Shown piece by piece: positions 50,887-64,000 of a DNA stretch of 64,000 nucleotides; the first letter of the stretch is position 1, and the number at the start of each line of letters is the position of its first letter. Below the pieces are notes generated by a model, which was given only the letters and a program-made list of their open reading frames with translations, did no database searches and was not told the origin of the DNA. The translations under genes and the position numbers were made by a program. The stretch lies in the IMG/VR virus record IMGVR_UViG_3300012988_000001, positions 248,001-312,000 of that record; one strand, written 5' to 3'.

Positions 50887-51039
50887 GGATTCAAACAGCA
50901 AACATCTGAAAAAATTATAGATGAAGTTACGACGATGTGCCTTAATCGGCCTAGTGAGTAACAGGCGGGTAGCGAGCTTAGAGCTATATTCATAGGTGAA
51001 AAATGTCGAGGCGGCCTATGTCTTATTCAAATTGAATCC
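50887..51039 (+). repeat. AACAGCAA stem-loop element, copy 1 (long)
   Basis: GGATTCAA-ACAGCAA...TTGAATCC. Confidence 0.6.
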
Positions 51040-51044
51040 AGTAT

Positions 51045-51136
51045 GGAAGGTTGGTCGAGTTGGTTTATGGCTCCAGTCTTGAAAACTGGCGACGGTTAAT
51101 AGCCGTCCGTGGGTTCGAATCCCACATCTTCCTCCA
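51045..51136 (+). tRNA. tRNA-Ser(TGA)
   Basis: GGAAGGT/ATCTTCC; CCAGT-CTTGAAA-ACTGG; long variable arm; CCA. Confidence 0.92.
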
Positions 51137-51137
51137 C

Positions 51138-51190
51138 GGAATCTAACAGCAATTTACTTTTTTCGATTATAAAAAAACCCAAAGGATTCC
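51138..51190 (+). repeat. AACAGCAA stem-loop element, copy 2
   Basis: GGAATCT-AACAGCAA...GGATTCC. Confidence 0.65.
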
Positions 51191-51194
51191 CGTT

Positions 51195-51572
51195 ATGACA
51201 TTTGATGATTTTGAAGTATACGTAAGACGTGAAATTGAGAATTATCTAAACCGCCCTGAGAGTAAAAGTATTTCACAGTGTTTTCACTTTGACAGTACTC
51301 AATACTTAGTGCTAAAATGGCGTAATACACCAAATACAGCAGATGTACGTTTCTCAATCAATTATGATTATGAAGATATGTATATTGAATTCACACTCAT
51401 TGTTGAGTATGATACTGGTGAAGACGAAGATGATCATCACAGTCAAGGTACTGTACATGATATACCAACATCTGAAGAAGAATACTTTCAAAAGAGTACA
51501 GTACAAGATTTAGGTTTCCGTTGGGAATTCTACCAGTACTTGTATGACTTCTTTGAAAAGCAAAGAACCTAA
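51195..51572 (+). CDS. Hypothetical protein, FQ-motif family
   Basis: TSEEEYFQKSTVQD. Confidence 0.75.
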   Translation: MTFDDFEVYVRREIENYLNRPESKSISQCFHFDSTQYLVLKWRNTPNTADVRFSINYDYEDMYIEFTLIVEYDTGEDEDDHHSQGTVHDIPTSEEEYFQKSTVQDLGFRWEFYQYLYDFFEKQRT

Positions 51573-51577
51573 ATTAT

Positions 51578-51659
51578 TGGGGAGTGGCAGAGCGGTCGAT
51601 TGCACCAGACTGTAAATCTGGCATACCACGCGTTGGTTCGAATCCAACCTCCCCAACCA
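51578..51659 (+). tRNA. tRNA-Tyr(GTA)
   Basis: TGGGGAG/CTCCCCA; CCAGA-CTGTAAA-TCTGG; CCA. Confidence 0.9.
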
Positions 51660-51677
51660 TTAAGAAAAGAATTGACA

Positions 51678-51929
51678 ATGAACACAAATTTTGAGACAAT
51701 ATGTGCACTTGCTCAAGGTATTATCGACGCAACGATTGATATGCCAGAGCAGTACGCACAGAAGATTGAAGAACTAGCAGCGACTATCGTTACAGTAGCT
51801 TCAATGGCTGAAGGTATCCCAACTGCTAAAACGATTGATAGTCGTGATCTTGTTGAGGGTCGTAATGATCTTGGTGATGGGATTGTTGCTTATCGCGAAG
51901 GTAATGAAATTCGCCTAGCTCGTGATTAA
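51678..51929 (+). CDS. Hypothetical protein, paralog of 52280
   Basis: MPEQYAQKIEELAATIVTVASM; start moved out of the tRNA. Confidence 0.65.
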   Translation: MNTNFETICALAQGIIDATIDMPEQYAQKIEELAATIVTVASMAEGIPTAKTIDSRDLVEGRNDLGDGIVAYREGNEIRLARD

Positions 51930-52034
51930 GTAATATACTGGTTAAGCTCATAGACGTTCCTTGTAACGGGAATAAGGGTTAACAGTACCGAACGTTATCG
52001 AGTAACCCCGAAAGACCCAAAGGTATATTACTTA
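51927..52034 (+). ncRNA. Candidate structured ncRNA
   Basis: 12-bp closing stem TAAGTAATATAC/GTATATTACTTA; internal GGGTT/AACCC and TTCC/GGAA. Confidence 0.45.
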
Positions 52035-52050
52035 CCTAACTGGAGAGCAT

Positions 52051-52278
52051 ATGTCAGTACTAAACAATAACTATTTCAGATTAAAAACTGAATTTGAAGT
52101 TCAAGTTGATATAAAATATATTGGTAATAATACATTTTCATATACTATTGATTCTAGTAATGTTGCAACTCCAGCACTTAAAGAATTGAAAACATTATTG
52201 TACTTTGAACCAAAAAGTGGAATACTACATGGGGTTGTAAAATTCTATGGTAAAGTTCCAGATGAGTTTGGAGATTGA
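52051..52278 (+). CDS. Hypothetical protein
   Basis: GGAG RBS. Confidence 0.6.
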   Translation: MSVLNNNYFRLKTEFEVQVDIKYIGNNTFSYTIDSSNVATPALKELKTLLYFEPKSGILHGVVKFYGKVPDEFGD

Positions 52279-52279
52279 A

Positions 52280-61729: not shown

Positions 61730-61946
61730 TCAACACCGTAAAATTACAGGCTATCGTGAACTAAGTGCAGAAGAGATTGCACTCATGAATGAAGTCAAAG
61801 AAATGAGTGCTCAAGTAGGGCAGTTAATTGAGAAACTACACTCAACCCCAGACGTTGACAAACGCTGGCTAAATATTGCCAAGACAGATTTACAGAAAGG
61901 CTTCATGAGTGCTGTACGCAGCGTTGCAAAGCCTGATTCATTCTAA
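61722..61946 (+). CDS. acb2: Anti-CBASS protein Acb2 (cyclic oligonucleotide sponge)
   Basis: [27 protein letters not shown]...[27 protein letters not shown] closely follows the Acb2 sequence pattern (from recall). Confidence 0.85.
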   Translation: [74 protein letters not shown]

Positions 61947-61955
61947 GGATAGAAT

Positions 61956-62636
61956 ATGGACAATTACGAACACACCCCCGGTGGTAAACCTTTTGACGAT
62001 TTAGATGCGTATTTCGATGATGACCATCTATCAGAAGAAGATAAAAAACTACTTGCTGAACTAGATGCGATCGATGTTAATACAGCAGAACTAGCAGTAG
62101 AGTTTACCGACCGTGACCTAGTACATAATAGTATGCTAATGGGTCGTATGGCTAAACTAAAAGGCCACGCTAATAACGTAGACTGTTGCTCTTACACTTA
62201 CGTAATCAACGTATATCAGAAAGACCCCGCCGCAAGTACTTTTAAGTACACTCGTGTATATGAATTCGCTGATAATGTATCCATCTCTCTAATGGAACTA
62301 TTCAGTACTCAAGGTTGTAACTTCATCAAGCGTAGTACCACACAGTGCTTTGGTGCTGATGAACTACATAACCCACACATTGAACTTGAACAACGTGCAG
62401 TTTATGTGTATGATTTAATTGTTCCAGAAGGTTTTGATATTGATGCAACGCATTATCATTACTTCTCTCACATCATTTCGTTTGAACCGTGGGAACAAAT
62501 TGAGGAACATTGGAATTCTGAACTCGAAGATGGTTGGGTTGACAGTCTCCCTGACCACCGCCACCTAGTTCTTCACAGCACGTCACCGCACCAGCTTGAC
62601 ACACGCAGTGCTATCTACATCCGTGACATAAAATAG
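61956..62636 (+). CDS. Hypothetical acidic protein
   Basis: AGGA RBS. Confidence 0.7.
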   Translation: MDNYEHTPGGKPFDDLDAYFDDDHLSEEDKKLLAELDAIDVNTAELAVEFTDRDLVHNSMLMGRMAKLKGHANNVDCCSYTYVINVYQKDPAASTFKYTRVYEFADNVSISLMELFSTQGCNFIKRSTTQCFGADELHNPHIELEQRAVYVYDLIVPEGFDIDATHYHYFSHIISFEPWEQIEEHWNSELEDGWVDSLPDHRHLVLHSTSPHQLDTRSAIYIRDIK

Positions 62637-62695
62637 TTGACACCGAGCCTGTACTGATGTAAAATTGGTACAGGCTTTTTAATTGGAGGATTCCT

Positions 62696-63178
62696 ATGTT
62701 TGTCGAAGCAGCCTTTATGGAGCAACTTGATATGCTCCCAATTCCCACGGACAAGGCACAGGTACGCTTTGATCCACCGGACAGCACTCACTACCGTGAC
62801 GGTCCCGGACACCCTAGCATGTATATCCTGAATGCACCACTGAAGACGTACTTCTATAGTACTGAAACGATGTGCTTCCTATCTCTAGATCTCAATGAAG
62901 AAATATCTTATAACTTCACTTGGTGGTTTGCGGATAATAAATTTGCAGCGAGCCTTGTTGATCTAAATGAATTGTACTGTGAGGACACCGTACCAATTCG
63001 CGATACTATCAAGTTTGGTATATTCCACGATACCGAGGAAGAACATTTCCAAAAGGATTGCCATAAAGGTACTCCACTATCCTGGGATGCTGAACAGTTA
63101 GTACAGAAGAAGTTAACGGCACTAGCTGATTTCTATCTTAACCAGTACTATAACAATTTCCTAGTAAGGAGTGAATGA
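62696..63178 (+). CDS. Hypothetical protein, FQ-motif family
   Basis: DTEEEHFQKDC; GGAGG RBS. Confidence 0.7.
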   Translation: MFVEAAFMEQLDMLPIPTDKAQVRFDPPDSTHYRDGPGHPSMYILNAPLKTYFYSTETMCFLSLDLNEEISYNFTWWFADNKFAASLVDLNELYCEDTVPIRDTIKFGIFHDTEEEHFQKDCHKGTPLSWDAEQLVQKKLTALADFYLNQYYNNFLVRSE

Positions 63179-63600
63179 TGTTTGATTTGCTATCACCTAA
63201 AGTACTTGAGATTACACGCCAGCGTTTATTAGGTCTTTCAAAAACTGAGATCTTTGCAGCACAACCAGAGCTACGTGAAGAACGCAATGAGTTCTTAATG
63301 AACTACGGCGATCAAGGCCGTGCTTATTACTTTGACTTCAACATTGATCTCGAAGATGGTTCGCGTGGTATTGAAGGATGTATCTCTGAAGATACTTTCA
63401 AGTTCACAGAGTACACCAGTAAAGATGAAAAGATCTTCAAGTTGGATATTCGTAAGCTACCATCTAAGATGGGTGAAGATGAATTCTTCCAGTACTCTCT
63501 AGTTACAGACATTGGGGATTTGACAGTAGAGCAGCTTCATGCTATTCTTGTAATCCGTGATATCATCCGTGAAGAAAAAATTGATTGGGGTGTAAAATGA
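63175..63600 (+). CDS. Hypothetical protein, FQ-motif family
   Basis: MGEDEFFQYSLVTD. Confidence 0.75.
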   Translation: MMFDLLSPKVLEITRQRLLGLSKTEIFAAQPELREERNEFLMNYGDQGRAYYFDFNIDLEDGSRGIEGCISEDTFKFTEYTSKDEKIFKLDIRKLPSKMGEDEFFQYSLVTDIGDLTVEQLHAILVIRDIIREEKIDWGVK

Positions 63601-63750
63601 AAGATAAACTAGAGAGCTATTTGTTTGTACTCGTGTTCATTTGGATGTGTCTGAAAGAAACAGTACTTAATACTCCTTGGATGCTTTTTGTACTGGGTAT
63701 CATCGTAGCAACCGGTTTCGCATATTTTGTCGGAATTATTTAAAAAACTT

Positions 63751-63779
63751 GGGACAAAATGAACTTTTTGTCCTATAAT
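63751..63779 (+). promoter_or_regulatory. GGGACA-class promoter with internal inverted repeat
   Basis: GGGACAAAA-TGAACT-TTTTGTCC-TATAAT. Confidence 0.75.
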
Positions 63780-63785
63780 ATAAGT

Positions 63786-63881
63786 ACAGGAAGGGATGGG
63801 TCATCGGGACCGTAGAAAGCGAAGGGTGCAATGAGCGACGGCAATAGATGCATATAGTAGTGGCTTTAGGAACCTTCCTGT
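63786..63881 (+). ncRNA. Promoter-proximal structured RNA candidate
   Basis: ACAGGAAGG/CCTTCCTGT closing stem; no ORF. Confidence 0.45.
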
Positions 63882-63888
63882 GAAATTT

Positions 63889-63971
63889 CGTTGAGTAGCT
63901 TAAGGGAGAGCCGCAGGTAATAACGATAAGGTCACCTGTCAGCGTGGATTAAAACACCACCTCAACAACAC
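63889..63971 (+). ncRNA. Degenerate tRNA-like RNA with an enlarged anticodon loop
   Basis: GTTGAG/CTCAAC; D-arm GCTT/GAGC; GCAGGT-15 nt-ACCTGT; GTGG/CCAC; no CCA. Confidence 0.5.
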
Positions 63972-63976
63972 AATTT

Positions 63977-64000
63977 GGAATCCAACAGCAATTTAATCAT
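63977..64000 (+). repeat. AACAGCAA stem-loop element, copy 5 (truncated by the window)
   Basis: GGAATCC-AACAGCAA-TTTAA matches copies 2-4. Confidence 0.55.

Follow-up and report, generated by a model that had tools for sequence, protein, structure and literature searches.

Putative small RNAs with a common basal module interspersed among the tRNA genes of a lineage of jumbo phages

Why large phages carry many tRNA genes is a matter of debate, in which codon supply is set against evasion of tRNA-targeting defences. The locus examined here raises the question of what else such gene clusters may encode. It lies in a 64,000-nucleotide (nt) stretch of the IMG/VR virus record IMGVR_UViG_3300012988_000001 (the window), which represents bases 248001–312000 of a phage genome that is complete at 366,160 bp and carries direct terminal repeats. 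The closest isolates of this phage are Salmonella phages Munch, 7t3, SE_PL, and PHA46 and Klebsiella phage fENko-Kae01 (Kae01); its remoter relatives include Serratia phage BF and Yersinia phage fHe-Yen9-04 (Yen9-04; both Eneladusvirus) as well as Pectobacterium phage CBB and Cronobacter phage GAP32 (both Mimasvirus). Of the 14 tRNAs that ARAGORN predicts in the window, ten fall within positions 51045–59785, and five copies of a short element are interspersed with tRNA genes. We judge the chances to be about even that these elements are small RNAs cut from early tRNA transcripts and that they carry a common docking module for one protein other than Ro60.

All five copies are located on the plus strand, at positions 50885–51042, 51136–51193, 52604–52665, 52670–52725, and 63975–64031 (including two flanking pairs), which confirms the five positions given in a preliminary description of this DNA made from the sequence alone. 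Copy 5 has its 5' part in the window (63975–64000), and its last 31 nt were taken from the phage genome past the window end. Each copy is closed by a helix, P1, of eight pairs that can be extended to nine or ten. Its arms, which had been quoted correctly, are GGATTCAA/TTGAATCC in copy 1, TGGAATCT/AGATTCCA in copy 3, and GAAATCCA/TGGATTTC in copy 4. The 5' arm is followed by A-ACAGCAA, an A/U-rich interior, an A-rich stretch, the 3' arm, and finally A/C-G-T/C. An interior varying from about 30 to 130 nt had been described; it measures 33–43 nt, with nearly no predicted structure, and the value of 130 nt applies to copy 1 only. In copies 1, 2, and 4 the stem extends as AC...N-GT with a one-base 3' bulge, as previously stated. 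Because the corresponding flank of copies 3 and 5 (TT...AG) pairs without a bulge, the latter is not a feature of the family.

Every copy is separated by 1–6 nt from a tRNA gene or another copy, so that the earlier remark on their abutting each other or tRNA genes holds. Copy 1 ends 5 nt upstream of tRNA-Ser(TGA) (51045–51136, plus strand), and copy 2 begins 1 nt past the CCA of the same tRNA. Copies 3 and 4 are 6 nt apart, and copy 4 ends 5 nt upstream of tRNA-Pro(TGG) (52728–52808, plus strand), which follows it directly. The end of copy 5 (window-equivalent 64031) precedes tRNA-Leu(TAA) (window-equivalent 64034–64121) by 6 nt. Two copies have additional features. The 3' arm of copy 2, AAGGATTCC, holds the Shine-Dalgarno sequence of an open reading frame (ORF) that starts at 51195, and the interior of copy 3 contains a small hairpin, TAC-ATTTGGC-GTA, which is kept in close relatives and has a 7-nt loop of the U33/R37 type.

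The motif ACAGCAA taken alone is not significantly enriched in the window (17 occurrences versus 9.9 expected, with 3 of 100 shuffles reaching 17). The composite element is far above chance. A covariance model (R1), trained on the four short copies of the window and their four Munch orthologs, gave scores of 73.5, 61.4, 70.2, and 68.2 bits for copies 2 to 5, respectively, and 52–63 bits (E values of 1e-8 to 1e-10) for copies in BF, CBB, GAP32, and Yen9-04 that had not been used for training. In the whole 366-kb genome R1 detected the four short copies and nothing further; copy 1 with its 130-nt insert was recovered by a pattern search. Per genome, R1 found five to eight copies in BF, Yen9-04, CBB, and GAP32, all of them on the plus strand in the tRNA region. 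With a motif-plus-helix script that tolerates long inserts the number rose to 12–14 per genome in Eneladusvirus and Mimasvirus, about half of these copies being 105–256 nt long. In total, the script yielded 69 copies in nine genomes, all in one orientation relative to transcription. Their 5' module reads WWRGAATCY-A-RCAGCAA, with CAGCA present in every copy recovered. The basal module of the relatives has the same layout as in the window (flank, RGAATYY helix, A-RCAGCA-A, A-rich 3' strand, AGY tail), and the spacing is likewise similar, with 11 copies located 5–8 nt upstream of a tRNA and six listed copies 1–3 nt after a CCA. Syntenic counterparts of copy 1, with compensatory changes in P1, precede tRNA-Ser in eight other phages.

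A search of Rfam and of phage genomes, as the preliminary description had proposed, led to the copies in related phages and to no Rfam match for the short form (all 4227 families, positions 40000–64000, E≤1). Klebsiella phage K64-1 (Alcyoneusvirus) has no R1 copies at E≤0.1. When IMG/VR was scanned with a 16-mer (AATCYAACAGCAAWTT), all 80 loci examined were chance matches by model score, and a 15-mer scan retrieved genuine copies from four uncultivated contigs, three of them jumbo phages of about 350 kb, plus isolate genomes. A minus-strand look-alike at genome position 347096 is situated inside a long stop-free, coding-looking stretch and was judged to be a chance match. As far as these searches reach, the family appears specific to one lineage of jumbo phages of about 350 kb, comprising the Munch-like group, Eneladusvirus, and Mimasvirus.

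Is the element recognized as DNA or as RNA? In an alignment of 29 sequences, double compensatory changes occur at five of the eight P1 pairs, 95% of the cells are paired, and the covariation score was reached by none of 500 shuffles; sliding the partner by one to three columns reduced pairing to 21–56%. Compensatory changes also distinguish each of copies 1, 3, and 5 from its Munch ortholog (in copy 3, G-C to A-U), and the differing arm sequences within a single genome are each still complementary. Counting identical arm pairs once reduced the 69 copies to 43 distinct arm pairs with 331 Watson-Crick pairs, 11 G-U pairs, one A-C, and one other mismatch. Because P1 covaries and G-U outnumbers A-C by 11 to 1, the pairing takes place at the level of RNA, on the transcribed strand. 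G-U is tolerated only on the plus strand, where all copies lie, and selection therefore acts on an RNA transcribed in the same direction as the tRNA genes. Alignment with Munch further shows nucleotide-level selection on the elements, by this comparative measure, and greater conservation than in their surroundings: copies 3 and 4 are 89.9% identical to their orthologs, as compared with 72–75% for neighbouring ORFs. The earlier suggestion of an RNA-level family within tRNA transcription units, characterized by covariation and a fixed single-stranded motif, is supported by the P1 covariation and the G-U signature.

As read from these comparisons, each member of the family combines a basal module that stays constant with a head that varies. 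The P1 helix at the base has a biased yet covarying sequence (RGAAUCY/RGAUUCY) and opens into an internal loop whose 5' strand begins with A-R-CAGCA-A and whose 3' strand is A-rich. The heads found in the window phage are an A/U-rich loop with a weak hairpin or, in copy 1, the 130-nt insert, and many copies of Eneladusvirus and Mimasvirus have a permuted tRNA-like domain as head. Among the long paralogs of 105–256 nt (GAP32, BF, Yen9-04, CBB), there are several classes with such a circularly permuted head. Its interior consists of a tRNA variable loop, a canonical T-arm, a tetraloop-capped hairpin of 6–7 bp replacing the acceptor stem, and a D-arm; the anticodon-like stem has 4 of 5 bp with compensatory changes. 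The T-arm and the capped acceptor hairpin are conserved among aligned long copies, and the D-arm, together with the covariation in the anticodon-like stem, was read directly from the long sequences. Judged by these features, the long head is a permuted tRNA body that is joined to the basal module at the would-be anticodon loop. In a long member from phage CBB (L162:9954-10209), the loop that caps the tRNA-like acceptor hairpin contains an insertion of about 140 nt; the heads themselves therefore accept insertions.

A tRNA-like architecture of this kind has been reported for the bacterial Y RNA YrlA (PMC4201824). The Rfam YrlA model (RF02553) matches GAP32 positions 310136–310244 over its full length (44.7 bits), and a copy in BF scores 40.3 bits. 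Practically the same stretch of GAP32 (310122–310246) is also matched by R1 (34.4 bits), a model built from short copies only; because both models match this one locus, the short and long forms are tied together. The family shares with YrlA and other bacterial Y RNAs a paired-end basal stem with a conserved motif in the 5' strand, an internal loop, and an effector head, and the long paralogs of GAP32, BF, Yen9-04, and CBB additionally have the T-arm, the D-arm, and the loop-closed acceptor stem in common with YrlA. With the capped-acceptor head of the long paralogs, the Y-RNA-like nature guessed at in the preliminary description came nearer the mark than the window by itself could reveal; the headless copies of the window and a missing sequence motif speak against it. 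The 5' end of YrlA is defined by the motif GNCGAAN0-1G, the presumed Ro60/Rsr contact (PMC4201824), which the family lacks (GNCGAA at the YrlA position in 0 of 69 copies). Unlike YrlA, moreover, the family is multi-copy (5–14 per genome) and resides inside tRNA clusters. YrlA is encoded on the same strand as a Ro60 gene and at most about 4 kb from it, whereas the present family has no Ro60 gene nearby or in six phage genomes.

Ro60 itself, which had been proposed as the partner, is not supported by these data. No TROVE domain (PF05731) was found in this phage, Munch, BF, CBB, GAP32, or Yen9-04, in a search in which control genomes gave matches; the bulged terminal helix that had been taken as a Ro-type sign is present in some copies only; and RtcB, whose co-occurrence had been suggested as a check, was not found in this phage. 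The family appears to be undescribed, since the usual protein partner of Y RNAs, Ro60, is absent, and the genome papers and literature that we searched contain no description of the elements, or of YrlA or small RNAs in this phage group. It appears to be a new variant among the modular, Y-RNA-like small RNAs, one that has another docking module and lacks Ro60.

How might such RNAs be made? Three near-identical promoter-like repeats (CTTGGGACAAAA...TATAATATAAGTA) are present in the window, and two of them precede a leader RNA, an element, and a tRNA. The first (GGGACA-17-TATAAT, 50788–50816, plus strand) is a putative promoter upstream of copy 1, the second is located at 57406–57434, and the third (63751–63779, plus strand) lies upstream of leader RNAs, copy 5, and tRNA-Leu. 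Copies 1 and 5 are found about 100–200 nt downstream of the first and the third repeat, with structured leader RNAs in between. The homologous region of phage CBB is described as an early region with RpoD-like promoters, and the paper describing it makes no mention of the elements (PMC5259590). We propose that the elements are co-transcribed with the tRNAs from early sigma-70-like promoters and would be released by the tRNA-processing machinery. The 3' end of an element could be set by the RNase P cut at the 5' end of the next tRNA, 5–8 nt downstream, and the 5' end by cleavage after the CCA of the preceding tRNA or by RNase E in the A/U-rich flanks, while P1 would shield both ends from exonucleases. 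The basal module would then serve as a shared docking site for one non-Ro60 protein, and the head may add a second function such as mimicry of a tRNA or of an anticodon loop. The headless copies of the window phage may be plain binding sites or competitors.

For copy 2 an additional role in cis is conceivable, in that P1, with the ribosome-binding site in its 3' arm, may also gate translation of the downstream ORF. The sequestration of the Shine-Dalgarno sequence is conserved in Munch, 7t3, and Kae01; the annotation of Munch places the ribosome-binding site in the same 3' arm, and the junction between copy 2 and the ORF is kept in the three phages despite the fact that tRNA-Tyr has moved relative to the ORF. 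It is tempting to go further and speculate that the lineage runs its own Ro60-independent Y-RNA-like system, in which one phage or host protein binds the P1-CAGCA module of 5–14 RNAs per genome, and interchangeable heads (mimics of the tRNA body, mimics of anticodon loops, or none) tether or decoy host enzymes that recognize tRNAs, for example anticodon nucleases, early in infection. We consider this elaborate scheme quite doubtful.

A number of observations weigh against small RNAs with a shared protein partner. The interiors of the short copies are nearly unfolded (predicted at -0.4 to -2.9 kcal/mol), and a P1 helix closing an unstructured loop of 33–48 nt is predicted to be marginally stable. 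Whole elements reach -6 to -10 kcal/mol with fold z-scores of only about -0.4 to -2.2; thermodynamics thus contributes little, and the evidence for structure comes from comparison. With the YrlA model even the best relative scores 44.7 bits, short of the Rfam gathering threshold of 69 bits, and sub-threshold matches of this model also occur at tandem tRNAs and in nine of 14 control genomes, for which reason the score alone is no proof of homology and the tRNA-like interpretation rests on the conserved T-arm, the capped acceptor, and direct reading of the sequences. The copies in the window are devoid of a tRNA-like head and of YrlA matches at E≤1 (40000–64000); over the whole phage genome the model gave weak matches at tandem tRNAs only (best in the window, 16 bits). 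The link to a Y-RNA-like function rests on paralogs in other genera. Ten flanking ORFs that were screened had no Pfam match and offered no candidate for the binding protein, and PHROGs assigned to flanking ORFs only an HNH endonuclease and families without known function. Finally, the public runs that contain the sequence are assembled contigs, which carry no information on RNA ends, and the sole raw RNA run had zero phage reads.

The most serious competing explanation, which we regard as unlikely but well worth considering, sees in the elements nothing but cis-acting sites that punctuate or insulate long early transcripts of tRNAs and mRNAs, the excised piece having no function. Guided by P1, the A/U-rich loop, and the flanks, RNase E, RNase P, or a phage endonuclease would part tRNAs from mRNAs, and the sites would shield the ends from exonucleases and sometimes mask a ribosome-binding site. 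The copies indeed fall precisely on junctions of the types tRNA/tRNA, ORF/tRNA, and tRNA/ORF, from which they are set off by short spacers of fixed length; their loops and flanks are A/U-rich and unstructured, and the ORF next to copy 2 has its Shine-Dalgarno sequence in the 3' arm of that copy. Even the tRNA-like heads of the relatives could be accommodated if they recruited RNase P, as YrlA of Mycobacterium smegmatis does (PMC4201824). A generic processing hairpin, however, needs neither an invariant CAGCA with a sequence-biased helix across three phage groups nor elaborate conserved heads, and most tRNA junctions of the same clusters, such as Asn-Asp and Lys-Glu, are without an element.

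A further alternative, raised already in the preliminary description and attractive though improbable in our view, casts the elements as decoys or sponges of tRNA-targeting host factors (anticodon nucleases or tRNA-cleaving defence toxins, for example), with the heads imitating the tRNA body or the anticodon stem-loop and the basal module providing stability. In keeping with this idea, the heads of relatives comprise a complete tRNA elbow, some of their 7-nt hairpin loops are identical to the anticodon loops of tRNA-Asn (CTGTTAA) and tRNA-Lys (CTTTTAA), copy 3 has its conserved 7-nt loop of the U33/R37 type, and phage CBB encodes a T4-type RNA ligase that is said to serve tRNA repair (PMC5259590). 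Yet most short copies, including copies 2, 4, and 5 of the window, have loops of 6–9 nt unfit as an anticodon loop, the stems of 3–5 bp are unstable, and the shared CAGCA module is left unexplained. To our knowledge, no nuclease partner has been described.

Highly improbable, finally, is a role as DNA-level repeats, that is, as a mobile element resembling a miniature inverted-repeat transposable element (MITE) or as a recombination module that shuffles tRNA and ORF cassettes and is transcribed incidentally: inverted repeats do surround a variable cargo, gene order in close relatives differs with break points at elements or T-arms (tRNA-Tyr flanking a homologous ORF on one side in the window phage and on the other in 7t3, and copy 2 plus the ORF missing from PHA46), and polymorphic homing HNH genes are nearby, but 69 of 69 copies have a single orientation relative to transcription, G-U pairs are tolerated where A-C mismatches are not (11 to 1), distinct arms within one genome stay complementary, the CAGCA motif lacks symmetry, the flanks show no target-site duplications, and the ten flanking ORFs screened include no transposase, the sole nuclease-like gene being that of the HNH endonuclease.

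Several other identities were considered for the five copies, and most were rejected. None of them is overlapped by a tRNA call of ARAGORN or Rfam (RF00005), and none has a terminator-like site, the A/U-rich stems being followed by AGY and not by a T run. A sigma-70 scan of the copies returned one weak match, in copy 3 (9 of 12 positions; TTGGAA-17-TAAAAT), and matches in the region are no commoner than in shuffled sequence; promoter activity of the interior TATAAAA-like boxes was dismissed because of their inconsistent spacing and the missing support by the scan. Likenesses to a MotA box, boxA/nut, RNase III sites, a type III antitoxin (ToxI), and the loop of signal recognition particle RNA amount to 4–5 coinciding nt, with mismatches at positions conserved across the family, and were dropped. 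A permuted tRNA gene matured by circularization was discarded since the would-be anticodon loops are inconsistent between orthologs. A reading of AACAGCAA as an Hfq A-R-N motif is a weak lead: the A/G variation would suit R, yet 25 of 72 candidate sites have T in place of the first A. A target complementary to CAGCA was not found in the window, where the reverse motif occurs within the HNH ORF and two other sites were not examined.

Known systems provide partial parallels. Species 1 and 2 of phage T4 (rnaC and rnaD) are small non-tRNA RNAs from the T4 tRNA cluster that are co-transcribed with the tRNAs and matured by the tRNA-processing machinery; they have paired ends and no known function, and are two unrelated single-copy RNAs. 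They share with the present family the setting among phage tRNA genes, and the latter differs in being multi-copy with a shared module. Another precedent is 3'ETS-leuZ of Escherichia coli, a tRNA-spacer fragment that is freed by RNase E or RNase P and acts in trans through base pairing with Hfq. Here, too, a functional RNA comes out of the spacers of a tRNA precursor, but such spacer-derived RNAs are not known to have a conserved closing helix or to form a multi-copy family. Repetitive extragenic palindromic (REP) elements, MITEs, and T4-type PeSL cassettes are short, repeated, imperfect intergenic palindromes at rearrangement break points. The present repeats also coincide with rearrangement break points; unlike those elements, they keep strictly to one orientation, show the G-U signature of RNA pairing, share a motif that is both invariant and asymmetric, and carry cargo with a tRNA-like structure.

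The surroundings of the elements contain further structured sequences. A leader hairpin upstream of copy 1 (50822–50869, plus strand), directly following the first promoter-like repeat, consists of a 13-bp stem with a short inner helix (-18.4 kcal/mol, z -3.5). Upstream of copy 5, and presumably on a shared transcript, the predicted fold of positions 63890–63966 (plus strand) is cloverleaf-like: besides an acceptor-like stem of 6 bp it has D-like and T-like arms and, between these, a 6-bp stem that closes a loop of 15 nt. This leader RNA is not a member of the family and received no call by ARAGORN or Rfam. Klebsiella phages K64-1, Muenster, and KP13-7 share its core at 95% identity, with compensatory changes in the acceptor-like stem (GUUGAG/CUCAAC to GACGG/CCGUC), and the leader is probably another undescribed tRNA-like RNA of Rak2-like phages. 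At 53949–54034 ARAGORN predicts a tRNA with a four-base anticodon (CTGG), next to which there is a weak tRNA-like match (54041–54109, 26.7 bits). Some 430 nt without a plausible plus-strand ORF follow after 54109 and end in a T-arm and a CCA-like tail near 54500–54543. The stretch 53949–54545 has no Rfam match and could represent degenerate tRNAs or another structured RNA.

Gene order in this region is variable. The HNH endonuclease ORF (52848–53417, identified by a PHROG match) is inserted between tRNA-Pro and tRNA-Asn and is missing at this place in a wastewater relative (contig joint 52735 to 53495), in Munch, and in Kae01; by this distribution it behaves as a mobile homing gene. The gene for tRNA-Tyr follows the ORF at 51195–51572 in the window phage and precedes its homolog in 7t3 and Kae01, which have two additional element copies as compared with window positions 51136–51660. 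In PHA46, recombination between T-arms has apparently removed copy 2 along with the ORF and most of tRNA-Tyr.

Our analysis adds to the picture of the tRNA clusters of large phages in that, in one lineage of jumbo phages, these clusters are also the source of non-tRNA RNAs that form a conserved, multi-copy set, some of which appear to mimic the body of a tRNA and all of which have one putative recognition module in common. If this module binds one protein, the family would be the first example of a Y-RNA-like scaffold functioning independently of Ro60, and it would offer a direct route to asking what tRNA mimics do during infection. Should the lineage indeed run a Ro60-independent system of its own, it would represent a new class of RNA-based counter-defence or of tRNA-pool management.

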